Part shown: positions 28,816 through 62,507 of the stretch, piece after piece | Numbering within the stretch: position 1 is the stretch's first letter | Layout: each line of letters begins with the position of its first letter | IMG/VR virus record: IMGVR_UViG_3300046660_000488 | Coordinates: 62,001 to 126,000 of that record | DNA length: 64,000 bases | Direction: 5' to 3' (one strand) | Made by a program: the position numbers and the translations under genes | Notes under the pieces: model-generated | The model's input: the letters and a program-made list of their open reading frames with translations, nothing else | Told to the model about the DNA's origin: nothing | Database searches by the model: none

Positions 28816-30762
28816 ATGAGCATTCCCCAGCTTGACGACGATGACATCGAGAAGCTTGACGACTTCCAGCACGCACGTCTTCGCACCGAAATGTGGTTGG
28901 GATCGCGAGACCCGAACACCCTGAACGTCCTCGAATACGAGGCCGGGAAGCCGAAGGCTGTTGAGACGACTTGGGTTCCGGCGGTCTTCACGGCCTTCCG
29001 TGAAATCCTCGACAACGCTCTGGACGAAATGATCACGCGCGGATACGGCGACCGGCTCGATGTGAGCTACGATCCCGCCACCGCGACCTTCATGATCAAG
29101 GACAACGGCCGGGGCATCCCGATCAATTTCAACGAGAAACACAAGCAGTACTCCGCCACGATGGCGATGACTGAGACCAAGGCTGGCCGAAACTTCAAGG
29201 ACCGTGGCAACTCGCGCGGCCTGAACGGCGTCGGCGGCTCGGTGGTGAACTTCTGCTCGGAATACCTGACCATCGACGTCATCCGCGACAAGAAGCATTT
29301 CAACCAGCGCTTCAACGAAGGCACGGGCGAAAAGCTGATTATCGAAGACCCGATCATCATGCCGACCGGTTCCAAGGACACGGGCACGAAGGTCAAGGTG
29401 AAGCTGTCGCACAAGGTCTTCCACGACCTGACCCTGCCGGAGAGCTTCATCAAGGCCCGCGTCTTCGAAGTGGCCCTGTGCTACCCGAAGCTGAAGGTCT
29501 ACTACAACGGCAAGCTCGTTTCGGCTGGCAAGCAAGGCGTCGAGAAGACCCTGTTCGGCGACCGCAAGCCGATCACCATCACCGTAGACGCGGTGACCAA
29601 CGTCAAGACCGGCACGATCCTGCCCGACAACACGCCGGAAGTGGTCCAGCGGCCGTTCCTGAGCAAGTTCTGGCTGGTCCCGGCCTTCTTCGAGTCGAGC
29701 GGCGAGCACACCCACAGCCTCGTCAACTGCATCCCCACGTTCCACGGCGGCAAGCACGTGGACACGTTCAAGCGCGGGTTCTTCGCTGGCATGCTCTCGG
29801 CTCTGGCCTCGAAGAGCAAGGCCAAGAAACTGAACCCGAACCGGTCGGACATGGAAGACGGGATGTTGATCTACAACATCACGGAAATGGACTCGCCCGC
29901 CTTCGACAGCCAGTCCAAGACGCGCCTGATCAACGAGGAAGTGGCGTCGGTGATCCGCAAGGCTCTCGACGACCCGGACTTCTTCAAGGGCGTGATCCGC
30001 CGCAATCCGGAGTGGGTCGATATGATCTACGCCCGTTGCGCGGAGCGGACCAAGAAAACCGACGACGCCGAAGCCAACAAGCTGGCCAAGAAGAACCTGC
30101 GGACCAAGGTCGCCGACCTTGAAGACGCATCCGGCGCCGACCGTTCCAAGTGCATCCTGTTCATCGCCGAAGGCAAGTCGGCCGTGGCGGGCATGGTCGA
30201 GGCGCGCAACGCCATGATCCACGGTGGCCTCCCGCTGCGCGGCAAGGTGCTTAACGTGTTCGAGGAGTCCACCAAGACCGTCCTCGAAAACAAGGCCCTA
30301 AGCTCGATCATGAAGGCCGTAGGCCTGATCCCCGGCCAGCGCGTGAACCGCCACCAGCTTCGCTACGGCAAGATTTACATCACCACGGACGCCGACGAGG
30401 ATGGGAAGAACATCGCAGCCCTGCTGATCAACTTCTTCTTCACGATGTGGCCGGAGTTGTTCGATCCCGAGAAACCGCCGTACGTCTATCTGTTCGACAC
30501 CCCGCTGATCGTCGCAGTCAAAGGCAAGACGCGGAAATACTGGTACAACGAGGACTACGACGACTTCAACCCGGAGCAGTACAAGGACTGGAAGCTCACC
30601 CGCGCCAAGGGTCTGGCCGCCCTGAAGAAGGACGACTGGAAGTGGGTACTTGAAAATCCGAAGGCTACACCCATCACTGACGATGGCGAACTGAAAGAGG
30701 CGATGAACCTCTTGTTCAATCCGAAACTCGCTGATAAGCGAAAGGAATGGATCGGGATGTGA
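28816..30762 (+). CDS. DNA topoisomerase II large subunit (T4 gp39+60 / GyrB-like)
   Basis: EILDNALDE, DNGRGIP, GLNGVG, TOPRIM AEGKSA, PLRGK, TTDADEDG, KGLAAL. Confidence 0.96.
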   Translation: MSIPQLDDDDIEKLDDFQHARLRTEMWLGSRDPNTLNVLEYEAGKPKAVETTWVPAVFTAFREILDNALDEMITRGYGDRLDVSYDPATATFMIKDNGRGIPINFNEKHKQYSATMAMTETKAGRNFKDRGNSRGLNGVGGSVVNFCSEYLTIDVIRDKKHFNQRFNEGTGEKLIIEDPIIMPTGSKDTGTKVKVKLSHKVFHDLTLPESFIKARVFEVALCYPKLKVYYNGKLVSAGKQGVEKTLFGDRKPITITVDAVTNVKTGTILPDNTPEVVQRPFLSKFWLVPAFFESSGEHTHSLVNCIPTFHGGKHVDTFKRGFFAGMLSALASKSKAKKLNPNRSDMEDGMLIYNITEMDSPAFDSQSKTRLINEEVASVIRKALDDPDFFKGVIRRNPEWVDMIYARCAERTKKTDDAEANKLAKKNLRTKVADLEDASGADRSKCILFIAEGKSAVAGMVEARNAMIHGGLPLRGKVLNVFEESTKTVLENKALSSIMKAVGLIPGQRVNRHQLRYGKIYITTDADEDGKNIAALLINFFFTMWPELFDPEKPPYVYLFDTPLIVAVKGKTRKYWYNEDYDDFNPEQYKDWKLTRAKGLAALKKDDWKWVLENPKATPITDDGELKEAMNLLFNPKLADKRKEWIGM

Positions 30763-30999: not shown

Positions 31000-31273
31000 C
31001 ACTCTTTATGTCATCTTCGGCCGTGGTGATTGACGGCCGCCCGAAACAGGTGCACGGCCCGTCGTATTCCCGCTCCAGACGCCCCCTGACGGCGTAGAGC
31101 ATGCTGATCTCCACCTCCCCATTCGGATAGACCTCGTAGGGCCTGTTGCACTCGCGGCAGGCCTCAGTTGTCTTGTCTCGAACAACAACGCTCGCGAAAT
31201 GGAGACAGTAGGGGCAATAGTGCTCCACTACCGTCTCTGCTTCCACGTGATAGTTGGCGGCCGGGTTTCTCAT
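30989..31273 (-). CDS. Zn-finger-like hypothetical protein
   Basis: CPYC...CREC. Confidence 0.6.
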   Translation of the reverse strand: MRNPAANYHVEAETVVEHYCPYCLHFASVVVRDKTTEACRECNRPYEVYPNGEVEISMLYAVRGRLEREYDGPCTCFGRPSITTAEDDIKSGRF

Positions 31274-32739
31274 AGCTTCAACTTCTTCAGTTCTTCGAGT
31301 TCAGTGTTGTATATATCCTTGCGGCGCGCTGGCTTGGCGAGAATATCCTTGTACTCTTTGATGTCGAGTTTCAGCTTCTCGATGATCGCGGTGACCTCCG
31401 CCTCGTATTCCTTGGTCCACCGGTAGGTGGGCAGGCTGACGACACGGCTCATCTGCGATTCGTCGAGCACGATCTTGGCCTTGCCGATGACCGTGGTGAC
31501 TTCCTCGACGACGCCTGCCCGGTTCGGGAACTTGCCCAGCTTCGAGGTGAAGCTGGTGTCCTTGAACAGGGCCTTCAGCGCGAGGTAGTAATTGAGTTCG
31601 TAGCTGGCGTCGTCGCGCATCTTCTCGTAGCGATTGACGTACCATTGCAGGCGCCACGCCACGAATTCCTTGACCACGTCTTCGGCCGACTCGTACTGCT
31701 TGATCCGTGTGCCGCCCCAGTCGATCACGACGATCCGTTCGGTGACCTTCTGGTGCAGCTTGAAGAACTCGACGGCGTCAGCGTCGGTCCACGCCTTGCG
31801 GGCCGGGACCTTGGTCTTGACGACCTTGCCTTCGATGGTCTCCGTTTTCACCGACGCAGGCTGAGCCGCCAGCGATCCGCGCAGCATCTTGATGGTGATC
31901 TTGATGCCGTCCGCCGACTCGTCGGTGAAGCCCTTGATCTCGCCGCTGTCTTCCATGGCGATCAGACGCTCTCGGAAATCCTCAAGCTCCATGCCCGGCG
32001 GCAGTTCGCTGATGTAGATCGTCGAAGTGTCGATGATCTTGGCCTTGCCGGTGTAGACCCACTGGTTGGGACCGACGTTCTTGACCGAAATGTCGTAGCG
32101 CTCATACGTCGGGATCAACTGCTTGACCGGACGGTCGTTCAGAGCGTCCTGCGTGGCCTGCACGAGGGCCTTGAACTGCCGGGGCAGGATGTTGGTGCTC
32201 CAACCCACCGCGACGCCCTTGACGCCGTTCAGGAGGACTACAGGGATCAGCGGCAGGAAGTGCTTGGGCTGGAGGTTCGAGCCGTCGTAATTCTCTTCCA
32301 GCGGGATCAGGTCGAGGTCGTTGTAGAAGAACGCCTGAGCGGCCTTGGAGCGGACGACCTCGGTGTAGCGCGGCGCGCCGATGCCTTCGACCGGCGCGAT
32401 GCGGCTACCGAACGCTCCCTCGCCCTGAATCAGGGGGACGTTGTTCTTGTAGGGGGCGGCCAGCAGGTTGATGGCGTTGTTCGCCGACGTCTCGCCGTGG
32501 ACGTACAGACGCTCGTAACCCATCAGCCCCGACAGGGCGAAGGTCTTCAGCTTCTCGGCACGGTTCCGCAGCAGCCACAGCGCCACGCGCTGGCCAAACT
32601 TCATGCCGTCTTCCACTGCCGGGATGGCGCGGGTTGAACAGACGTAGATGGCGTATGAGCGGCTGTCGCGGAGGATAAGCTTGCTCGAAGACAGCAAAAT
32701 GGCCTTCGAAGACAACGGTTTTGGTACTGACTTGGCCAT
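31270..32739 (-). CDS. DNA topoisomerase II medium subunit (T4 gp52 / GyrA-like)
   Basis: RAIP..EDGMK.GQR, YVHGETS, GAFGSR, APRYT catalytic Tyr, LLNG..GVAVG. Confidence 0.95.
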   Translation of the reverse strand: MAKSVPKPLSSKAILLSSSKLILRDSRSYAIYVCSTRAIPAVEDGMKFGQRVALWLLRNRAEKLKTFALSGLMGYERLYVHGETSANNAINLLAAPYKNNVPLIQGEGAFGSRIAPVEGIGAPRYTEVVRSKAAQAFFYNDLDLIPLEENYDGSNLQPKHFLPLIPVVLLNGVKGVAVGWSTNILPRQFKALVQATQDALNDRPVKQLIPTYERYDISVKNVGPNQWVYTGKAKIIDTSTIYISELPPGMELEDFRERLIAMEDSGEIKGFTDESADGIKITIKMLRGSLAAQPASVKTETIEGKVVKTKVPARKAWTDADAVEFFKLHQKVTERIVVIDWGGTRIKQYESAEDVVKEFVAWRLQWYVNRYEKMRDDASYELNYYLALKALFKDTSFTSKLGKFPNRAGVVEEVTTVIGKAKIVLDESQMSRVVSLPTYRWTKEYEAEVTAIIEKLKLDIKEYKDILAKPARRKDIYNTELEELKKLKL

Positions 32740-33448: not shown

Positions 33449-33985
33449 ATGCGATCCCGCAAGACCGCTGCTGCATTTCTATTCGTGCTAACTCTACTAA
33501 CGACAAGCATTTTCTCGGGCACGACAGCTAAAGCTTCCACTCCCCAACCCACCATCGCAGCACTCGAAAAAATCGTCCCCTCGTCGCTTGACGACATCGA
33601 CGGGGAAAACCGCAACCAGATCGTTTGTCTCGCTCTGAACATGTATCACGAAGCTCGGGGTAGCACCCAAGCCGACATCATGGCAGTCGGGCACACGACC
33701 AAGAACCGAACCAAATATCGAAAGAAGACCTACTGCAACGTCATCTGGGAAAAGGGCCAATACGACTGGGTCCGACGTCCGATTTCGCAGCAAATGCCCA
33801 AGGACTTAAAGACGTGGCGCCAAATGGTGGATTCCGCCCGTCAGATCGTCATGGACGATCTACCCGATCCGACTAAAGGGGCAGACAGTTTCTATTCTCG
33901 TCGTCGGGGACCAACAGCACAAGCCACACGGTCCTCTGTTCGCGTACCCATTGGCGGTAATGTTTATTACCGAATGGGTGGTTAA
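33449..33985 (+). CDS. SleB-like cell wall hydrolase (Hydrolase_2) with signal peptide
   Basis: CLALNMYHEARG, AVG..KNR, CNVI..GQYDW, DPTKGA; RBS AAGGAG. Confidence 0.88.
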   Translation: MRSRKTAAAFLFVLTLLTTSIFSGTTAKASTPQPTIAALEKIVPSSLDDIDGENRNQIVCLALNMYHEARGSTQADIMAVGHTTKNRTKYRKKTYCNVIWEKGQYDWVRRPISQQMPKDLKTWRQMVDSARQIVMDDLPDPTKGADSFYSRRRGPTAQATRSSVRVPIGGNVYYRMGG

Positions 33986-33996
33986 ATAGGGCAATC

Positions 33997-34362
33997 ATGA
34001 GCCCCGAAGACCTAGAACTCTGGAAGAAGGTGACCGAAGGTCTGGTTCCCTTGCTTCCCAAAACCAGCGCTCCGGCAATCCGGCCGGATGCGCTCGTTAT
34101 TCAGCGTCCCCGTGCGCGCCAGTCGGAAATCGACTTGCACGGCCTCACCATCCAACAAGCTTGCGTCGAGACCCGGCAGTTCATCACGGACGCCAAGGCC
34201 GCAGGCCTGCGTCACGTGACCATCATCACGGGACTGTCCGGCTACATCCGCCGGGAATTCCCCTTCTGGGTTGATCAGCTACCCGAAGTCCGCAAGATCG
34301 AGCCGTTCAGCGGCGGCGGAGCCTTCAAAGTCTATCTCAAACGCGATAAGCGCCGAGCGTAA
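33997..34362 (+). CDS. Stand-alone Smr-domain nuclease (SmrB-like)
   Basis: N-terminal EDLELWKKV helix, IDLHGLT..QA, IITG, GGGA. Confidence 0.9.
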   Translation: MSPEDLELWKKVTEGLVPLLPKTSAPAIRPDALVIQRPRARQSEIDLHGLTIQQACVETRQFITDAKAAGLRHVTIITGLSGYIRREFPFWVDQLPEVRKIEPFSGGGAFKVYLKRDKRRA

Positions 34363-34858
34363 TCGGCGCCAGCGAGTCCACCAGAATCACGCCATGCTCG
34401 TCGCAGCCCGGCTTCACCAGATGCAGAAGATCGTCCACCAAGACGGTGCAGCCCAACTCGGCCGCCTTCTTGCCCTTGAACCGGATGAACTCGCGAGCAT
34501 GGTCGATCTTCAGCGCTTCCCAATCGCCGGTCGCCTCAGCCTCGTACAGCGCCATGCGGGCATTGATCTCGTTGTCCACGACGCCGCAATGGACGTTAAA
34601 GCAATCCGACACGATGGTCGGACAGCGGTGGATGCCAGCGATCAGCCGGTGAGCTTCGTGCAAGCCGTGGGCGTGCAGTTCAGGGATGATGATGTCGGCC
34701 CACTCGTCCGTCTCACGGAAGGTGATGACGTGGTGGGTCTTGTGGGGCGTCATGGCGATGTAAGCGCGCCAGAAAGCCGAATTGTCACCCTTGATCAGGG
34801 TCTTGTCCATGTCCCACGCGATGGTGTCGTGCAGGTCGAGTACTGGATGAAGGTTCAT
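34337..34858 (-). CDS. HAD-superfamily phosphatase-like protein
   Basis: AWDMDKTL motif I, ITFR, LVDD motif IV. Confidence 0.7.
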   Translation of the reverse strand: MNLHPVLDLHDTIAWDMDKTLIKGDNSAFWRAYIAMTPHKTHHVITFRETDEWADIIIPELHAHGLHEAHRLIAGIHRCPTIVSDCFNVHCGVVDNEINARMALYEAEATGDWEALKIDHAREFIRFKGKKAAELGCTVLVDDLLHLVKPGCDEHGVILVDSLAPITLGAYRV

Positions 34859-34914
34859 AATGTCCGCAGAGAATGGTTACGCGAATATTTAGGATTTTGA
34901 CACAACCTATGATT

Positions 34915-35635
34915 CGATTCTATCGTCCGACTCTTGGACTGTTTGTCCACCATAGCTCAGGGCGTACAGCGGTTGCCCACCGCACGACGGAAGCCGGGAC
35001 TCTATCCAGACCGGCAACCATGAGGCAGAGCAGCCGACAAGACATATGACGAGCTACAAGCCGGTGCAAGTCCGGATGGCAAGCAACCTCATGTGGCCAC
35101 TTGGTGGAACACTCGTTCCATAAGAGCGCGCCTTAAAAAGAAGAGAGTTGCGTCTTGTTTCATTTGACGCCTCTCTGCGTGCGACCGATCCCTCGACTGT
35201 CGGCGTACGTGCTTGAACTACACCCTCATAACCGTTTTGCTATACCCGTTCACCCGAGACGCACCGCGCCGGGGATGAAAGCGCTCGCTTGAGCACATCC
35301 TTCCGGACCGCGCAACGTCTCCATCTTCAGGTGGAACGCGCAAGGATTGGGCCGTCACATGCTGGTACAGGGAAACCGCCAGCCTCAGCAAACAAACTGA
35401 TCGCGGCTTGTCGAGAGACCAACAACTCATGGTCAAATCATCCTCCCTCTTGGACTGGAATCCTTTACCCGGATTTCTGTTCAAGGGGGAGGAAAGAGAC
35501 ACTAAATCTATGGTTCAAGGAATAAACGGTCTCCTTCCTCTATCATCAAGGTACAACTTGGCGTGACGGGATGAGCGTAGCGACAGCGAAGCGATTCCCA
35601 AGCGCCATCAGGAGGCGTAGCCGCCTGATCGAATA
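34915..35635 (+). ncRNA. Putative large structured non-coding RNA/element
   Basis: ~830-nt gap without a credible ORF; many nested complementary stems, a T-loop-like hairpin and a GAAA tetraloop (see findings). Confidence 0.6.
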
Positions 35636-35695: not shown

Positions 35696-36220
35696 ATGCT
35701 CATCACCCCGCCCAAAATTCTTGTGGCAGACATCGAGACCAACGCCATCCACAACCCGACCCGTTTCTGGGTCCTTGGCATTCTCGATTACCACACCGAC
35801 GAGTTCACCGGACATGTGGGCGACGACGACATCGCCGAGGGGCTGATGCGTCTGGAAGAAGCTGACCTGATCATCGGCCACAATTTCTTGGGCTACGACA
35901 ACAAGAATATCACCCGCCTGACCGATGGCGTCTTCGTCCTCGACAAGGAGAAGATCATCGACACCGTCAAGCTGAGCAGGTCACTCGTCAAAGAGTTCGA
36001 CACCTCTCGCGGCGGTCCGGGCCACGGCCTGAAGGCATGGGGTGATCTTTTCGGTTACCCGAAGGGTAACTGGGACAAATTCGACCGTTTCTATCCCGAA
36101 ATGGTCCCATACTGCGAGCAGGACTGCCGAATCACCAAGAAGGTGTTCGATTTCGTCAACGAGATCGAGACCGGCATCCATGGTCGCATCAACCTGCTGG
36201 AACGAGCGAATGTCCGATGA
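35696..36220 (+). CDS. Stand-alone DnaQ-like 3'-5' exonuclease (PolA-exo type)
   Basis: ExoI ADIETN, ExoII GHNFLGYD, ExoIII YCEQDC. Confidence 0.88.
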   Translation: MLITPPKILVADIETNAIHNPTRFWVLGILDYHTDEFTGHVGDDDIAEGLMRLEEADLIIGHNFLGYDNKNITRLTDGVFVLDKEKIIDTVKLSRSLVKEFDTSRGGPGHGLKAWGDLFGYPKGNWDKFDRFYPEMVPYCEQDCRITKKVFDFVNEIETGIHGRINLLERANVR

Positions 36221-37001
36221 CATTTTCACCCAAATTGGCCTCGACGATGAGGACCGGTTCAACGCGGAGAACGACATCGAGTTGATGCCGACCGATCCTC
36301 GCGATCTTAACGGCATACCAGCAGATGAACTCGACTCTGAGATCGAGTTGGCACAACTGGATGGCTTTACCTATGCGGAGGCCAAAGCCATGGTCCTTCG
36401 CCGCGCCAACGTCGATACCGCGTTGACCAAGCACGGGATGATGGCGCCCGACAGCGTCATCGCCAAGGTCCGCGACACGCGCAAGCTCGACGATTCTGCC
36501 TTCATCTTGGCTCCCAAGGACGTGAAGGCGACCTCGGTTTCGATCATGAACCGCATTCGCGGGATCGTCACCTACGCCAAAACCTACCCGACCGGAACCT
36601 ACGTCCTGCTCGGCGACCACAAGAACTGGTTCGTCTGCCGCATCGGCCTTGTCGAGGACGACACGTTCCAACACGTGGTCCACGTCATGAAGGACAAGGA
36701 TGGTGTTCACTGGATGGACGCCGCCAAGGTCAGGCATTCGTTCTCCAACCGCTGGGAGAGCATCATTCATGCTTTCGCGGATGACGAAGACGCTGTCGTT
36801 TTCATCAAGCAGTTCGAGAGCAAGATTTACCGCCTGCAAGCAATCATCGAAGAGTCCGACCGCATCATGCTTGAAAGCATGCAGAGCGGTGACTACCAGC
36901 GTGCACGAAATATTTCAACCGCGATGAACTCAACATACGACGAGTGCATCGACCATTTCAGAACGCTCGGCGTCTACAACAAGATGTTCGACGACAACTA
37001 A
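36210..37001 (+). CDS. Hypothetical protein
   Basis: Probable start MSDDIF at 36210. Confidence 0.75.
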   Translation: MSDDIFTQIGLDDEDRFNAENDIELMPTDPRDLNGIPADELDSEIELAQLDGFTYAEAKAMVLRRANVDTALTKHGMMAPDSVIAKVRDTRKLDDSAFILAPKDVKATSVSIMNRIRGIVTYAKTYPTGTYVLLGDHKNWFVCRIGLVEDDTFQHVVHVMKDKDGVHWMDAAKVRHSFSNRWESIIHAFADDEDAVVFIKQFESKIYRLQAIIEESDRIMLESMQSGDYQRARNISTAMNSTYDECIDHFRTLGVYNKMFDDN

Positions 37002-41932: not shown

Positions 41933-42024
41933 GGAGCCGTGGTAGAGAGGCTTATTGCACCCGTTTCGAAAGCGGGAGTGGTCGTAAAAACCCACCGAGG
42001 GTTCGAATCCCTCCGGCTCCGCCA
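41933..42024 (+). tRNA. tRNA-Ser(CGA)
   Basis: CCCGT-TTCGAAA-GCGGG, long variable arm, GGTTCGAATCC, G73-CCA. Confidence 0.95.
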
Positions 42025-42053
42025 AGTACATCGAATATCTGAAGCTCCTTCGC

Positions 42054-42143
42054 GGAGGGCGGGCAGGCCGGTAATGCAGCGCACTGCTAATGCGTACAGC
42101 CCTTCAAACGGCTGAGAGGGTTCGATTCCCTCGCCTTCCGCAA
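42054..42143 (+). tRNA. tRNA-Ser(GCT)
   Basis: GCGCA-CTGCTAA-TGCGT, long variable arm; 3' end GCAA (CCA not encoded). Confidence 0.92.
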
Positions 42144-42155
42144 AGGAGCTTCAAT

Positions 42156-42247
42156 GGAGCCGTGGCCGAGTGGCTTAAGGCGCTCGCTTGGAAAGCGAGT
42201 GTGGTCGTAAAAACCCACCGTGAGTTCGAATCTCACCGGCTCCGCCA
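42156..42247 (+). tRNA. tRNA-Ser(GGA)
   Basis: CTCGC-TTGGAAA-GCGAG; acceptor stem and variable arm identical to Ser(CGA). Confidence 0.95.
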
Positions 42248-42251
42248 ACAT

Positions 42252-42338
42252 GTTGTGATGACCGAGTGGTCGAAGGTGCGGGATTGCAACCCCCGTAGCG
42301 TAAAGCTCACGTGGGTTCGAATCCCACTCACAACTCCA
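42252..42338 (+). tRNA. tRNA-Cys(GCA) with atypical long variable arm
   Basis: CGGGA-TTGCAAC-CCCCG, U73-CCA, variable hairpin AGC-GTAAA-GCT. Confidence 0.88.
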
Positions 42339-42362
42339 AATACGCTCCGTGGTCTGTCTTGT

Positions 42363-42446
42363 GGGCAGGTGGGTGAGTGGCTGAAACCGGAGGACTGTAA
42401 CCCCTCTCTGAAAGGCGCGCTGGTTCGAATCCAGCTCTGCCTACCA
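42363..42446 (+). tRNA. tRNA-Tyr(GTA)
   Basis: GAGGA-CTGTAAC-CCCTC, variable arm, A73-CCA. Confidence 0.92.
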
Positions 42447-42478
42447 GTCAGACCACGGAGCAAAATGTTCTTTCTCAT

Positions 42479-42563
42479 GCACAGGTGGTGTGAGTGGTTT
42501 AAGCCGGGAGACTGTAAATCTCCTCCGAAAGGGACGCTGGTTCGAATCCAGCCCTGTGCACCA
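42479..42563 (+). tRNA. tRNA-Tyr(GTA), second copy
   Basis: GGAGA-CTGTAAA-TCTCC, A73-CCA. Confidence 0.94.
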
Positions 42564-42610
42564 GAAAGAACATTTGAGCCAGTCTAGCGAAAGCAAAGCT
42601 GGTTCATTTT

Positions 42611-42686
42611 GCTAGTGTAGCTCAGTTGGTAGAGCGTCGGCTTGTGGAGTCGATTGTCGCGGGTTCGAGCCCCGCCGCTAGTTCCA
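42611..42686 (+). tRNA. tRNA-His(GTG) lacking G-1 (G1.U72, U73)
   Basis: TCGGC-TTGTGGA-GTCGA; base -1 is T. Confidence 0.9.
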
Positions 42687-42739
42687 TTTCAACCCGAGCA
42701 TCCGGCAATTGTGCCGGTGCTCACAACAGGAGAAATATC

Positions 42740-42970
42740 GTGCAAGTCCAGACCCACACGCAATGCGTTCTGCGTCGCGCTACGGGGTCCACTCAAGTCT
42801 CGTGGATTCCGACCAAATTCGCTCAGGAAGGTCGTGTTCTCGAACTTGATGAAGATGGCCGTGCAAACGGCTGGACTGTCGCGGAAGTCTGGGGCTTCAA
42901 CATGCCCTCCAAGATCGTCTTCGAGCGTGAACGCGATTTCAAGAACCACCGCAAGGCGACCGACGTATGA
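42740..42970 (+). CDS. Hypothetical protein
   Basis: AGGAG RBS, GTG start. Confidence 0.65.
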   Translation: MQVQTHTQCVLRRATGSTQVSWIPTKFAQEGRVLELDEDGRANGWTVAEVWGFNMPSKIVFERERDFKNHRKATDV

Positions 42971-43134
42971 GCAAGCCCGACAAGAAAAAGGCCAAGCTCC
43001 AATCGGCGATCACCGCGCTAGAGGCCAAGCTGCAACAGTCCCTCGGGAAGAAGGACTCGCGCACCGTTGAAATCGACGTCCCCGGCACTCTGCGTCAGAT
43101 TGCCGTCCTGAAGAAGCAATTGGAGGCCGTGTAA
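42967..43134 (+). CDS. Small basic coiled-coil protein (55 aa), not in ORF track
   Basis: ATGA and TAATG overlaps with both neighbours. Confidence 0.7.
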   Translation: MSKPDKKKAKLQSAITALEAKLQQSLGKKDSRTVEIDVPGTLRQIAVLKKQLEAV

Positions 43135-43412
43135 TGGCTGGCCGGATCGAAACGTATACGCACAGCGACAAGTCGGTTCCCAACAAGGGAGGCGCCATTG
43201 TCGCAGTCCGCTCGCAGACCGATTTCGCGGCCCGCACGGACGAGTTCATAGCCTTCGCCCAGAAGGTCGCCAAGATGTCGTTCGCGGCTCAGGCAACCAA
43301 CTGGGAGGACGTCACGGCCGCCTTCCCCGATTTGGAAGATGAGCGTGTCGCCCTGACGAAGGCGATCAAGGAAAAGGTCGAGATCGACCAGATCGTCATC
43401 CTGACGATCTAA
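43134..43412 (+). CDS. tsf: Minimal elongation factor Ts core subdomain (92 aa)
   Basis: GRIETYTH...GGAIVAVRSQTDFAARTDEFIAFAQKVA matches EF-Ts G.I.SYIH...GVLVEVNCETDFVARNEEF..LA; KEKVEI matches GENIKV. Confidence 0.8.
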   Translation: MAGRIETYTHSDKSVPNKGGAIVAVRSQTDFAARTDEFIAFAQKVAKMSFAAQATNWEDVTAAFPDLEDERVALTKAIKEKVEIDQIVILTI

Positions 43413-43416
43413 GAGG

Positions 43417-43524
43417 TCTGGGTTGACTGAGTGGTCATAAGGTTGATCGGATACTAGAGAGCGGAGGTGGGTGTACCGGCCCAACACCAAGGCTCACGTG
43501 GGTTCGAATCCCACACCCGGAACA
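43417..43524 (+). tRNA. Aberrant tRNA-like gene with intact acceptor/D/T arms and an expanded, unpaired anticodon region
   Basis: TCTGGGT/ACCCGGA acceptor; T arm GTGGGTTCGAATCCCAC identical to the Cys tRNA at 42252; no canonical anticodon stem. Confidence 0.6.
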
Positions 43525-43541
43525 TTTACGAGGACAAGGAC

Positions 43542-44160
43542 ATGTTGAGAGGCACGAGAATTCTGGAAGGCGACGAAGCCGTCGCCTACGCTAAGGTGAT
43601 CGACACGCTGCGGGTGTGTCTTCATTGAAGCTGGCTTCGAGGAAGTGATCCTTCCGGCGATCTGGGAACAGCAGACCTTCATTGATAAGGCTGGCCCCGA
43701 GATCGTCAACCAGATGTGGGCATTCAAGGACAAGGGCGACCGCCCTGTCTGCCTCATCCCCGAAGTCACCGGTCTCGTGCAAGAGACTTGGCGGGATACA
43801 TGGTCGAAGACGTGCAAGTCCAAGCGCATCTTCTACGTCTCCCGCTGCTACCGCTACGAACGCCCCCAAGCTGGGCGCTACCGTGAATTCACACAGTTCG
43901 GGGTAGAGTTGCTTGGGGACGTTCCCGGCGGGACCGAAGAGGTCAAAGGTCTGCTGATCGCCGTGCTCGACAAGCTCGGCCTCAGTTACCGGTTCAGCGA
44001 CGCGGTCAAGCGAGGCTTGACCTACTATGTCGAGGACGGCTTCGAGGTCGAATGTGAGAGCTTGGGCGCCCAGAAGCAGATCGCCGGTGGCGGTCGATAC
44101 GCGGAAGGGATCGGGTGGGCCATTGGTGTGGACCGCCTGCTGCTCGCGCTCTCGAAGTAG
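43542..44160 (+). CDS. hisS: Catalytic-domain-only histidyl-tRNA synthetase, made via +1 frameshift at 43620-43625 (205 aa)
   Basis: Frame-0 MLRGTR...TLRVCL joins frame+1 IEAGFEEVILP, gapless against HisRS motif 1; motif 2 RYERPQAGRYREFTQ; motif 3 GGGRY..GWAIGVDRL; no anticodon-binding domain. Confidence 0.88.
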
Positions 44161-44167
44161 TTTCTAT

Positions 44168-44243
44168 GGTGGTGGTAGTTCAGCGGTAGAACGCCAGACT
44201 GTGACTCTGGATGTCGCGGGTTCGATCCCCGTCCATCACCCCA
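44168..44243 (+). tRNA. tRNA-His(GTG) with canonical G-1:C73
   Basis: G-GTGGTGG/CCATCAC-C-CCA; CCAGA-CTGTGAC-TCTGG. Confidence 0.95.
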
Positions 44244-44337
44244 AATTCTGGTTGACCAAATACCCCGGCGGGTGTTAGGTTGGCCAATCGATCAACTCCT
44301 CACGCTTGTATTTCATTGCAGCAAGAGGAGAAGAAAG

Positions 44338-44589
44338 ATGCAAGTTTTCGTACTGACCGAGTCGCATCACATCGCGTACGAGGGAACGTGGACCGTAGTC
44401 CAAGGCGTCTATCTGACGCGGGATGAAGCCTTCGCGAAAGTGAAGGAACGCCTGCCAAAGGAAGCCGACCATGGGCAAGAAAAGTTCATGATCGTTCGGA
44501 GCCGTAGTGCAGACGAGCAGTGGTTCAGGCTACGTGAAATGACCGTGGGCGAGTACCAAGGTCGTGACGTTCTGTTCTATGAAGACTAA
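44338..44589 (+). CDS. Hypothetical protein
   Basis: GAGGAG RBS; start MQVFVL. Confidence 0.7.
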   Translation: MQVFVLTESHHIAYEGTWTVVQGVYLTRDEAFAKVKERLPKEADHGQEKFMIVRSRSADEQWFRLREMTVGEYQGRDVLFYED

Positions 44590-44641
44590 CGAGTGGGCGG
44601 GCTTCGGTCCGCCCATTCCACCCGCCGGACCGACGTGATAC

Positions 44642-44732
44642 GGAGGGTTGGCCGAGCGGTAAGGCTCTGGTCTTGAAAACCAGTGACAGGGTGACGAGCC
44701 CTGCGGGGGTTCGATCCCCTCACCCTCCGCCA
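44642..44732 (+). tRNA. tRNA-Ser(TGA)
   Basis: CTGGT-CTTGAAA-ACCAG, long variable arm, G73-CCA. Confidence 0.95.
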
Positions 44733-47998: not shown

Positions 47999-48073
47999 TG
48001 GCGCCTTCAGCCGGGCTCGAACCGGCGACCTACAGATTTAGAGTCTGCTGCTCTACCGCTGAGCTATGAAGGC
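47999..48073 (-). tRNA. Amber suppressor tRNA (CTA), G73
   Basis: GCCTTCA/TGAAGGC, GCAGA-CTCTAAA-TCTGT, GGTTCGAGCC, CCA encoded. Confidence 0.92.
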
Positions 48074-48079
48074 GTCCTT

Positions 48080-48155
48080 TGGTGATCACAGTCGGGCTCG
48101 AACCGACGACCCGCAGATTTAGAGTCCGCTGCTCTACCAACTGAGCTATGCAATC
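48080..48155 (-). tRNA. Amber suppressor tRNA (CTA), A73
   Basis: GATTGCA/TGTGATC, GCGGA-CTCTAAA-TCTGC, CCA encoded; TTGACC promoter upstream. Confidence 0.92.
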
Positions 48156-61963: not shown

Positions 61964-62507
61964 GAATGAGCGCAAGTACGTCCTCGCGGTCGATGAGCCC
62001 TATGCGTTCCGTGACGAATTGCTGGCGCGCACCGGCGCCCGCAGCCAGCGCATCCAGCAAGGCTACGTCGGTGAGCACATTCGCTTCCGGCTGTCCCAGA
62101 CGGCGTCGTATCTGCGGACGTTCAACGCCTTCATGACCTTCAAGATGAAGGTCGGGGACGAACTGATCGAGATCGAGACCGACATGGCGCTCGCTGATTT
62201 CCGCAAGCTCTGGGAGTCCGACAAGGTCGAGCGCAAGCTTATCAAGGAACGCATCTGCGTTCCGCACTACAACAACACGTGGGAAGTCGATTTCTTCATC
62301 GAACCGGCCGACGTCGGCAATGGATTCGAGAAAATCTACATGGTCATGGCAGAGGTCGAACTGCCGCCCGGCAGGCTCCTGCCGTCAAGCGTGCCGAAAT
62401 TCATCAACGACAACCTGATCTATTTGGTTGAGCCCAACGACCTGCGGTTCGTCAACGCCCGCCTCGGCACGCCGGACGAGGTCCGCGCACTGGTCGCCAG
62501 CCTCTAG
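61953..62507 (+). CDS. CYTH-domain triphosphatase-like protein
   Basis: ENERKY (ExExK), IQQGY, EIE, KERI, WEVDFF, MAEVEL. Confidence 0.88.
   Translation: MPVENERKYVLAVDEPYAFRDELLARTGARSQRIQQGYVGEHIRFRLSQTASYLRTFNAFMTFKMKVGDELIEIETDMALADFRKLWESDKVERKLIKERICVPHYNNTWEVDFFIEPADVGNGFEKIYMVMAEVELPPGRLLPSSVPKFINDNLIYLVEPNDLRFVNARLGTPDEVRALVASL

Follow-up and report, generated by a model that had tools for sequence, protein, structure and literature searches.

A large, intricately folded non-coding RNA predicted in megaphages and on integrated mobile islands of Alphaproteobacteria

The gap between two genes of a 578-kb megaphage from a rhizosphere metagenome is most likely an independent gene for a non-coding RNA of roughly 700 nt, with a complex, evolutionarily maintained fold that matches no family in Rfam 15. 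The analysis was carried out on a window of 64,000 nt from this genome (IMG/VR record IMGVR_UViG_3300046660_000488, positions 62,001 to 126,000), to which all coordinates below refer. The RNA is one of four diverged paralogues (~62% identity) in this phage, and it belongs to a family of at least 34 distinct members, which occurs in one to four copies per genome in related megaphages, on metagenome contigs and in five alphaproteobacterial genomes. The predicted fold includes at least a dozen helices, among them a 5' H-type pseudoknot, a central multi-tier domain, a GAAA-capped hairpin and a covarying long-range loop-loop pairing, interspersed with the invariant or near-invariant single-stranded blocks AACCGU, GG...ACCGCC, ACUCAGG and AUCUAGG. 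We consider this reading to have a probability of about 0.8, with the reservation that there is no direct evidence of a transcript: the only run labelled RNA-Seq that holds the sequence carries a single 186-nt contig, 97% identical to 35327-35511, and this run was judged to be probably DNA.

A first-pass annotation had proposed, from the sequence alone, that this region encodes a large phage ncRNA or ribozyme on the plus strand, possibly of a new class, and had listed eight stems and a TTGACA element. Each of these sequence elements was found to be present at its position, and the main idea is supported. To assess whether the region folds better than expected by chance, we compared its minimum free energy with that of shuffled sequences. 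The plus strand gave -268.7 kcal/mol against -239.3 +/- 6.0 for shuffles (z = -4.94), and the minus strand gave z = -1.98. However, comparative analysis showed that half of the listed stems are not the evolutionarily conserved ones. The AGAGAG/CTCTCT stem with GCGTC/GACGC, the GAGACG/CGTCTC stem with GGATG/CATCC, and GCTGG..GAAA..CCAGC are conserved and covary, while the T-loop hairpin is real but present in only a subset of members. The remaining four, TCCACCA/TGGTGGA, GGTTGCC/GGCAACC, ATGAGG/CCTCAT and GAGGAAAGAGAC/GTCTCCTTCCTC, were found only in this copy and overlap conserved, covarying helices, clashing with the 5' pseudoknot, the GTGGA/TCCAT hairpin and the CTCCCTCTT/GGGGGAGGA helix. 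A tRNA-like 5' end (acceptor plus D-arm) was likewise rejected, as the "acceptor" stem TCCACCA/TGGTGGA is confined to this copy and helix P1 covaries rather than keeping a D-arm sequence. A second correction is that the family is not restricted to phages.

Homologues were collected by a pattern scan of IMG/VR, metagenomes and genomes, and by nhmmer and covariance model searches; most of the metagenome and genome hits of the pattern scan were chance matches and were removed with nhmmer. The phage members belong to a clade of >400-kb phages related to Sinorhizobium phage Phosso and Agrobacterium phage Atu_ph07. Neither of these two cultured relatives nor one complete clade member (G003) has a match to the core model, so the RNA is dispensable for this kind of phage, and a blastn search of GenBank phages with the region found no match. 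In bacteria, including Microvirga sp. M2, Microvirga sp. 3-52, Azospirillum sp. TSH64 and Mesorhizobium sp. KR2-14, the RNA lies on tRNA-integrated islands next to integrases or resolvases. It is sporadic, as none was found in a sample of 150 other Alphaproteobacteria examined under stricter filters.

To test whether the fold has been maintained by selection on base-pairing, we next examined compensatory changes. Among the four paralogues, 46 of 106 predicted pairs have compensatory changes. Across 34 members and about 600 nt, 113 pairs are 84.9% canonical, against 40-43% when the partner is slid and 71.2 +/- 0.4% in shuffles, and 89 pairs show double changes. In a 174-nt core aligned with a covariance model, 91.6% of cells pair, against 72.7% in shuffles and 34-47% in slid controls; 32 of 40 pairs show double changes, and the covariation score was 0.489 against 0.165, with 0 of 500 shuffles as high. 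The alignments behind these counts were partly fitted to the model, or to MAFFT plus RNAalifold, which inflates pairing somewhat, and the members are related, so that shuffle tests overstate significance. Furthermore, the 5' and 3' variable regions remain imperfectly aligned and the full secondary structure is provisional. In the helices, G:U (12.2%) outnumbers A:C (4.2%) three to one, which, together with the fold z-scores and the promoter, supports the plus strand as the RNA. The individual features are listed in the table.

Table. Features of the predicted RNA locus and its neighbours, with window coordinates
Position	Strand	Feature	Supporting observations
34337..34858	-	Divergent upstream neighbour, a HAD-like protein (DMDKT motif), homologous to a Sinorhizobium phage Phosso gene annotated as polynucleotide kinase	BLASTP 31% identity, E = 2e-19; syntenic next to the RNA in 9 loci; no Pfam family found
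34897..34926	+	Sigma-70-like promoter: -35 TTGACA (34897-34902), 18-nt spacer, -10 TATCGT (34921-34926); block GATTCTAT (34916-34923) invariant in all four paralogues	Consensus scan 10 of 12; the same TTGACN-18-TAnnnT layout at the same distance in many members, 14 of 31 scoring >= 9/12
34933..35632	+	Gene for the ~700-nt structured non-coding RNA (paralogue c1, the "a" locus); ends inferred from the promoter and the 3' GC-rich hairpin	Four paralogues and 34 distinct homologues found over nearly this whole span by nhmmer and the covariance model; not coding
34946-52 / 35102-08		TCCACCA / TGGTGGA	This copy only
34954..35032	+	P1 helix AGCTC (34954-58) / GAGCA (35028-32), enclosing the 5' pseudoknot and the GCCGG (34993-97) / CCGGC (35011-15) helix	All five P1 pairs with three or more pair types and 82-97% pairing in 33 sequences; CCGG helix 76-88% paired
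34960..34983	+	5' H-type pseudoknot: S1 GGGCG 34960-64 / TGCCC 34974-78; S2 GCGG 34969-72 / CCGC 34980-83; A-rich stretch follows in most members	Both stems covary: S1 as GGAG/CUCC, GAAAG/CUUUC and GGCGG/CCGCC; S2 as GGGG/CCCC, GCUGC/GCAGC and GAGG/CCUC
34971-77 / 35013-19		GGTTGCC / GGCAACC	This copy only
35020-25 / 35087-92		ATGAGG / CCTCAT	This copy only
35061..35075	+	Hairpin CCGG-TGCAAGT-CCGG with a T-loop-like loop, in a variable region	Present only in the members G0a, G1a, G1b and M123; the only part behind a sub-threshold twister-sister hit of 17 bits against a gathering score of 34
35104..35121	+	Conserved hairpin GTGGA / TCCAT, just before the conserved A-rich GGCAC motif	Five pairs with 3-5 pair types each
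35142..35176	+	Hairpin AGAGAG-..-CGTC / GACG-CTCTCT carrying the near-invariant TTTGAC	Compensatory changes in all four paralogues (GATAG/CTATC, GGCGG/CCGCC); pairs 89-97% canonical in 34 sequences
35178..35209	+	Helix CGTGCGAC / GCGTACG; loop CTCGA (35192-96) pairs at long range with TCGAG (35411-15)	Stem: six pairs at 100% canonical, five with three or more types; loop-loop pairing covaries in all paralogues (CTCAAC/GTTGAG, TTTCG/CGAAA, TTCGAT/ATCGAA), five pairs of three or more types
35227..35235	+	CATAACCGT, the most conserved single-stranded block	AACCGT invariant in all 34 members
35247..35338	+	Central three-tier domain: CGTTCACC / GGTGGAACG; GAGACG (35256-61) / CGTCTC (35316-21); CCGGGGATG (35269-77) / CATCCTTCCG (35296-305)	Helices 3-8 of the model; 23 of their 26 pairs show changes on both sides
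35349..35409	+	Domain GGGCCGT / GCGGCTT, enclosing the hairpin GCTGGT-..GG-GAAA-CC..-GCCAGC (35361-83) and the hairpin TCAGC / ACTGA (35385-400)	Helix 9 is 99.5% paired and five of its six pairs covary; GG...ACC invariant
35425..35432	+	Conserved motif AACTCAKG	Near-invariant
35443..35493	+	Helix CTCCCTCTT / GGGGGAGGA around a hairpin of very variable length	93-96% canonical; three pairs with three or more types
35489-500 / 35529-40		GAGGAAAGAGAC / GTCTCCTTCCTC	This copy only
35503..35512	+	Conserved motif AAATCTAKGR	Near-invariant
35575..35629	+	Variable 3' tail with the GAGCGnnAGCGA motif, and a terminal GC-rich hairpin ATCAGGAGGC-GTA-GCCGCCTGAT (35607-29) lacking a U-tract	Motif and an equivalent hairpin recur in many phage members; no canonical terminator found
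35696..36220	+	Downstream neighbour, a DEDD-type 3'-5' exonuclease ("DNA polymerase exonuclease subunit")	phrog_403 at 9e-16, phrog_17 at 5e-18, PF13482 weakly

We also examined whether the region might instead encode a protein. It has no credible ORF under table 11 or with TAG read through, and TGA read-through opens long frames everywhere in this GC-rich DNA and means nothing. No member has a frame open across the conserved 540-650 nt, the longest frames (36-161 codons) fall at inconsistent places, indels are not multiples of three, and column variability shows no period-3 signal (p = 0.69). Although the window holds two tRNAs with a CUA anticodon, so that some TAG read-through in this phage is conceivable, the compensatory changes with a G:U over A:C asymmetry point to a single-stranded transcript of the plus strand, and a coding gene or a DNA-level element conserved for reasons unrelated to RNA is very improbable.

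To determine whether the RNA belongs to a known family, we searched Rfam 15 at gathering scores with the whole window and with 14 further member loci, at E <= 10 with the region, and at E <= 5 with 15 member loci. Only noise and tRNAs were returned, with no match to GOLLD (RF01998), ROOL (RF03087), bacterial RNase P RNA (RF00010/RF00011), tmRNA or group I or group II introns. ARAGORN found no tmRNA in the window or in 40 member loci. The element lies between complete genes, has its own promoter and interrupts no gene, so it is not an intron. Short words such as GGAGGAAAG and GGGAAACC..AACCGCC may resemble E. coli M1 RNA, and tRNA arrays lie nearby, but the order of the motifs does not match RNase P, inspection of the consensus revealed no CR-V-like partner for the GGAGGAAAG word, and four diverged copies per genome would be odd for a housekeeping RNA. 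Thus, a very divergent member of a known family missed by the covariance models appears highly unlikely.

The genomic context was then compared among loci. A homologous exonuclease gene follows the RNA in 7 of 34 loci, five of which are one syntenic phage locus, and which include a bacterial-type integrative island on a metagenome contig (L060) and a Caulobacter MAG contig. On L060 the order is tRNA, integrase, RNA, exonuclease and defence genes, and integrases or resolvases were also found in the loci L061, L127, L169, L183/184 and L156. A tRNA array lies 1-6 kb downstream of the "a" locus in four phage lineages. Apart from the syntenic HAD-like gene and the exonuclease, neighbours are unrelated, and no other conserved protein partner was apparent. 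We infer that the RNA is made from its own host-type (sigma-70) promoter and acts in trans as a folded RNA, and that it is not a leader of a particular gene, because neighbouring genes differ between paralogues and some are convergent. Any assignment of function is entirely inferential. As a tentative proposal, the RNA may be a self-folding architectural RNA of mobile elements, possibly self-assembling, like GOLLD and ROOL, in which the invariant unpaired nucleotides would build tertiary or quaternary contacts or a binding or active site. It would serve the nucleic-acid transactions of the element, given the recurring exonuclease gene downstream and the DNA-replication gene neighbourhood.

Several other roles were considered, each of which appears less likely than this one. 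The RNA might be a partner, regulator or decoy of a nuclease in conflicts between mobile elements and hosts, i.e., a cofactor or inhibitor of the adjacent exonuclease or a decoy for host RNA- or tRNA-targeting defence nucleases. The homologous exonuclease lies immediately downstream on the same strand in two unrelated settings, the megaphage "a" loci and the L060 island plus the Caulobacter MAG contig, and the L060 island carries HEPN plus GmrSD (NsnA/PD-T4-2-like) and a BglII restriction-modification system, while the upstream phage neighbour is polynucleotide-kinase-like. However, 27 of 34 loci have no exonuclease neighbour, the other three paralogues in this genome have unrelated neighbours, the genome has only one such small exonuclease, and PADLOC gave no hit for the exonucleases beyond a marginal DEDDh match, making this reading doubtful. 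A similarly doubtful possibility is that each copy marks a replication origin, where the structured transcript forms an R-loop or primer, much as ColE1 RNA II and the T4 oriF/oriG transcripts appear to do. Copies are more evenly spaced than chance in complete genomes, with gaps of 0.21-0.30 of the genome in G000 and 0.16-0.37 in G005, and of 0.46/0.54 and 0.48/0.52 in the two-copy genomes (Fisher p = 4e-4 on a circle and 0.016 on a line), although these tests are not independent because the phages share synteny. The "a" copy also lies among replication genes (topoisomerase II subunits, an Smr-domain protein and the DNA polymerase exonuclease subunit), and on bacterial islands the RNA sits next to the integrase and an exonuclease. 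Nevertheless, no GC-skew inflection or switch of gene orientation was found at any copy, no AT-rich unwinding element is shared downstream, a complete relative has no copy of the RNA, and about 600 nt with pseudoknots and invariant unpaired blocks is far more structure than known primer RNAs need.

A new self-cleaving, ligating or otherwise catalytic RNA is also unlikely on present evidence. Large size, pseudoknots and about 17 invariant plus about 55 near-invariant nucleotides, many of them unpaired, are typical of large ribozymes (PMC5737381), but GOLLD, ROOL and OLE have similar features and no known catalysis, and no ribozyme family in Rfam was matched; the twister-sister (RF02681) hit (E = 1.3) rests on a hairpin absent from most members. 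Still less probable is a cis-acting 5' leader or riboswitch controlling the exonuclease gene. In the loci G0a, G1a, G4b, M060 and the Caulobacter MAG the RNA lies on the same strand 42-118 nt upstream of the exonuclease gene, and the absence of a U-tract makes read-through possible, but most copies precede unrelated genes or convergent genes, or lie antisense within a gene run (c2 and c4 of this genome are examples), and a length of 650-800 nt with a separate strong promoter is atypical for a leader. Finally, a rather unlikely possibility is that the RNA, kept in one to four diverged copies spaced at about a quarter or half of the chromosome, works at chromosome scale, for example by priming or licensing multiple replication origins or by organising or condensing a half-megabase phage genome, or alternatively assembles into an RNA-only quaternary structure.

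Very few bacterial or phage RNAs longer than 500 nt have a conserved, complex fold, i.e., rRNAs, group II introns, GOLLD, ROOL and OLE, and each has proved biologically or structurally remarkable. A further class would widen the set available for structural and functional work, and the copies in cultivable soil bacteria make genetics and biochemistry possible, which is not the case for the uncultured megaphages. The recurring exonuclease neighbour and the regular spacing of copies offer testable leads to a function, something GOLLD and ROOL still lack.

Among known systems, ColE1 RNA II and the phage T4 origin transcripts are probably comparable as promoter-driven structured transcripts of several hundred nucleotides that work at the DNA level, and multiple dispersed copies would fit multiple origins, but the structural complexity and conservation here are far greater. 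OLE RNA (RF01071) and the raiA motif RNA are other large, highly structured bacterial ncRNAs whose biochemical function is unresolved; those are chromosomal RNAs of Bacillota and Actinobacteria with conserved protein partners or gene contexts, whereas this one is sporadic and carried by mobile elements, and there is no model match. By size, phage and island context and nearness to tRNA arrays, the RNA most resembles GOLLD and ROOL, which form RNA-only assemblies (10.1101/2024.12.08.627333). ROOL is a large (~580 nt) ornate RNA with multistem junctions and pseudoknots and few absolutely conserved positions, associated with prophages and tRNAs and of unknown function (PMC5737381). The RNA described here is longer, its taxa differ, and its recurring neighbours (DEDD exonuclease, integrase) are not those we found given for ROOL in that work. 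GOLLD is a very large (~800 nt), multi-pseudoknot, stand-alone RNA gene of unknown function, found in phages and prophages and also elsewhere, often near tRNA genes (PMC5737381). The present RNA resembles it in kind only, with 650-800 nt and at least two pseudoknotted interactions, but it does not match the GOLLD model, occurs in Alphaproteobacteria and their megaphages rather than in Lactobacillales and lake metagenomes, and is present in up to four diverged paralogues per genome.

The 578,292-bp IMG/VR virus record from which bases 62001-126000 were taken carries direct terminal repeats, and the only sequencing run that holds the whole stretch is a rhizosphere metagenome. The interval under study lies between a minus-strand gene for a HAD-like protein upstream and a plus-strand gene for a DEDD-type exonuclease downstream. 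All eight complementary segments, as well as the TTGACA, that were listed in the first-pass annotation were found in the sequence where it placed them. To test whether the interval might encode a protein, open reading frames were examined under table 11, which was used throughout, and with TAG read through, and no credible ORF was found. The window carries two adjacent tRNA genes with a CUA anticodon, labeled tRNA-Pyl by ARAGORN and called tRNA at 63-72 bits by Rfam, which look like amber-suppressor tRNAs, so the phage may read TAG as sense in some genes. The plus strand folded much better than its shuffles (z = -4.94), while the minus strand gave z = -1.98.

To determine whether this element occurs elsewhere, we first searched the phage’s own genome with nhmmer and BLAST. 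Four copies at about 61-65% identity over ~740 nt were found: c1 at 96.9 kb (+), which is the element described here, c3 at 217.8 kb (+), c2 at 389.9 kb (-) and c4 at 539.4 kb (-). All four share the promoter block TTGAC..GATTCTAT, a series of invariant motifs and visibly compensatory stems. Next, six related megaphages of 266-608 kb were identified through the topoisomerase II large subunit, at 59-67% amino-acid identity, and a covariance model of a 174-nt core was used to search them. This model found 15 members, of which four were in this genome (G000), four in the related megaphage G005, two each in G001, G004 and G006, and one in G002, while none was found in the complete genome G003. Finally, a degenerate pattern built from invariant blocks was scanned over IMG/VR, metagenomes and one genome per prokaryotic species. 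After filtering with a family HMM and removal of duplicates, this gave 34 distinct members. The additional viral contigs are fragments of genomes estimated at about 440-560 kb. Five members come from bacterial genomes, all Alphaproteobacteria: Microvirga sp. M2, with two copies, Microvirga sp. 3-52, Azospirillum sp. TSH64, Mesorhizobium sp. KR2-14, with two copies, and a Caulobacter MAG. The family is sporadic, as none of 150 other sampled Alphaproteobacteria has it. The closest cultured phages, Sinorhizobium phage Phosso (51% topoisomerase II identity) and Agrobacterium phage Atu_ph07 (48%), do not match the core model. In addition, the source rhizosphere sample holds a separate 328-nt low-depth contig that matches only the conserved hairpin (35345-35384) and continues as in another family member (…GCCGCTATAGACGCGGATCGTGGCTTGTCG), and a second carrier of the RNA family is therefore present in the same sample.

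To assess whether the conserved sequence is maintained as a folded RNA, we analyzed compensatory changes. With the four paralogues alone, RNAalifold predicted 106 pairs, 46 of them with compensatory double changes. On the 34-member alignment, the consensus structure plus one long-range pairing gave 113 pairs with 84.9% canonical cells, and 89 pairs showed double changes. Pairing fell to 40-43% when partners were slid by 1-3 columns and to 71.2 +/- 0.4% in column shuffles. On a core alignment fitted to the covariance model, 91.6% of cells paired against 72.7% in shuffles, 32 of 40 pairs changed on both sides, the covariation score was 0.489 against 0.165, and no shuffle of 500 reached any observed measure, while slid controls paired at 34-47%. 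Because the core alignment is fitted to the model and the sequences are related, the shuffle statistics overstate independence; however, the slid controls and the abundance of three to five pair types per position do not depend on that. G:U pairs (12.2%) outnumbered A:C (4.2%) threefold, as expected only if the plus strand is the folded molecule. There was no codon periodicity (p = 0.69), and no frame spans the element in any member. We found no convincing RNA data for the element: a wastewater run labeled RNA-Seq holds one 186-nt contig, 97% identical to 35327-35511, and nothing from the flanking genes, and this run was judged to be probably DNA.

The features of the element and its surroundings are collected in the table below. 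Of the stems proposed in the first-pass annotation, three are part of the conserved fold, whereas the T-loop hairpin is a lineage-specific insert. The other four (TCCACCA/TGGTGGA, GGTTGCC/GGCAACC, ATGAGG/CCTCAT and the 12-mer at 35489-500 / 35529-40) are peculiar to this copy and compete with conserved helices. The variable regions are not well aligned, and the model is provisional there.

Features of the RNA element and of the genes around it, in window coordinates
Coordinates	Strand	Feature	Observations
28816-30762, 31270-32739, 33449-33985, 33997-34362		Topoisomerase II large and small subunits, a cell-wall hydrolase domain protein and an Smr-domain protein	Neighborhood upstream of the RNA
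34337-34858	-	HAD-like gene	DMDKT motif; 31% identity (E = 2e-19) to a Sinorhizobium phage Phosso gene annotated as polynucleotide kinase
34897-34926	+	TTGACA-18-TATCGT	Consensus scan, 10 of 12
34933-35632	+	RNA element, copy c1 (ends inferred)
34954-58 / 35028-32		P1
34960-64 / 34974-78		S1 of a compact H-type pseudoknot	Covaries
34969-72 / 34980-83		S2 of the same pseudoknot	Covaries
34993-97 / 35011-15		GCCGG/CCGGC helix
35061-75		T-loop-like hairpin	Within a variable region, in this copy
35104-21		Hairpin
35142-76		TTTGAC hairpin
35178-85 / 35203-09		Helix
35192-96 / 35411-15		Loop CTCGA of the preceding helix pairs with TCGAG	Covaries in every paralogue (CTCAAC/GTTGAG, TTTCG/CGAAA, TTCGAT/ATCGAA)
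35227-35		AACCGT within this block	Invariant
35247-35338		Three-tier central domain
35349-55 / 35403-09		Helix closing a domain	Domain holds the hairpin at 35361-83
35361-83		GAAA-capped hairpin
35425-32		Motif ACTCAKG
35443-51 / 35485-93		Helix	Around a length-variable hairpin
35503-12		Motif AAATCTAKG
35607-29		GC-rich hairpin	Ends a variable 3' tail; no U-tract
35696-36220	+	DEDD-type exonuclease gene	phrog_403 ‘DNA polymerase exonuclease subunit’ at 9e-16; PF13482 weakly
36042-37001	+	Next ORF, 319 aa	No family match; overlaps the exonuclease ORF by 179 nt in a different frame
41933-44732	+	Array of Ser (CGA, GCT, GGA, TGA), Cys, Tyr and His tRNA genes	Also at L123:3465-6221, L134:2119-3359 and L040:900-2775 (other loci of the family)
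47999-48155	-	Two adjacent tRNA genes with a CUA anticodon

We next examined the genomic context of the family. Neighbors of the four paralogues are unrelated to each other; they include a DnaJ-like gene downstream of c2, and most have no family match. Some are convergent, and c4 lies antisense within a run of plus-strand genes, which argues for a trans-acting product. One copy per phage, the ‘a’ locus, is syntenic and consists of the HAD-like gene, the RNA and the exonuclease, followed 1-6 kb further on by the tRNA array, which is conserved at this place in four phage lineages. In this genome, the ORF that overlaps the exonuclease ORF may start later, or the pair may be joined by a frameshift. 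The order topoisomerase, Smr, HAD/‘polynucleotide kinase’ is also kept in Sinorhizobium phage Phosso, which has no RNA at that place.

In the non-megaphage loci, i.e., bacterial genomes and metagenome contigs, the RNA lies on integrated mobile elements. The metagenome contig JGI25828J46368_100023 (L060, 1-8414) is a compact tRNA-integrated defense island with a tRNA, a DUF6538 tyrosine integrase, the RNA and, 77 nt later, a PF10108 exonuclease, followed by a HEPN (RiboL-PSP) gene, a GmrSD_N gene that is NsnA/PD-T4-2_A-like by PADLOC, a resolvase, an MT-A70 methyltransferase and a BglII-family restriction endonuclease. Integrases or resolvases flank the RNA in the loci L061, L127, L169, L156 and L183/184. 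The last two are on the Microvirga sp. M2 chromosome (NZ_CP134063.1, RNA cores at 472,622 and 489,883) and are 2,449-bp segments, 99.96% identical and in inverted orientation about 17 kb apart, each of which carries the RNA, a 155-aa ORF and a serine recombinase (resolvase). They sit on an island with tRNA-Ala, a DUF6538 integrase, a KaiC-like ATPase and an HWE histidine kinase, and the layout resembles a composite or invertible element. The exonuclease on L060 and the phage exonuclease hit the same PHROG families, and a same-strand exonuclease follows the RNA in 7 of 34 loci, in two unrelated settings.

An unexplained regularity was observed in the complete or near-complete genomes, in which the copies are evenly spread about a quarter or half a genome apart. 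The gaps were 0.21, 0.30, 0.26 and 0.24 of the genome in G000 (copies at 97.2, 218.1, 389.4 and 539.0 kb, only the first of which lies in the window), 0.16, 0.23, 0.24 and 0.37 in G005, 0.54 and 0.46 in G004, and 0.48 and 0.52 in G006. The probability of minimum gaps this large is 0.005, 0.048, 0.077 and 0.035 on a circle, and the combined p is 4e-4 on a circle and 0.016 if the genomes are treated as lines. However, these genomes share ancestry and synteny, the tests are not independent, and neither GC skew nor gene orientation marks the sites. We regard this spacing as a lead and not as a result.

To determine whether the element belongs to a known class, it was compared with Rfam 15, and no family matched, including GOLLD, ROOL, OLE, HEARO, RNase P, tmRNA, group I/II introns and self-cleaving ribozymes. 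The only ribozyme-like hit, to twister-sister at 17 bits against 34, rests on the non-conserved T-loop hairpin, and ARAGORN found no tmRNA. Literature searches for large structured RNAs of phages, megaphages or new ornate RNA classes returned nothing that describes it, although the literature searched was incomplete and a prior description elsewhere cannot be excluded. Altogether, our results strongly support a real and apparently undescribed class of large structured non-coding RNA, carried by megaphages and integrative elements of Alphaproteobacteria.

The RNA has a conserved, complex fold on the plus strand and, in many members, its own promoter-like element at a fixed distance, and we infer that it acts in trans as a folded RNA. 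Modes of action other than the one favored below appear less likely. A specific partnership with nucleases, or a decoy role toward them, is possible but unlikely, and an origin or primer role is slightly less likely still. Catalysis is doubtful, cis-regulation is improbable, and there is only a remote chance that the element is a hidden member of a known family or an artifact.

By size, complexity, phage and island carriage, nearness to tRNAs, where GOLLD and ROOL are also often found, and lack of a constant protein partner, its nearest analogues are GOLLD and ROOL (PMC5737381). We tentatively favor, at about 35-40%, a GOLLD/ROOL-like architectural or self-assembling RNA that serves the element’s nucleic-acid transactions; GOLLD and ROOL themselves fold and assemble without proteins (10.1101/2024.12.08.627333).
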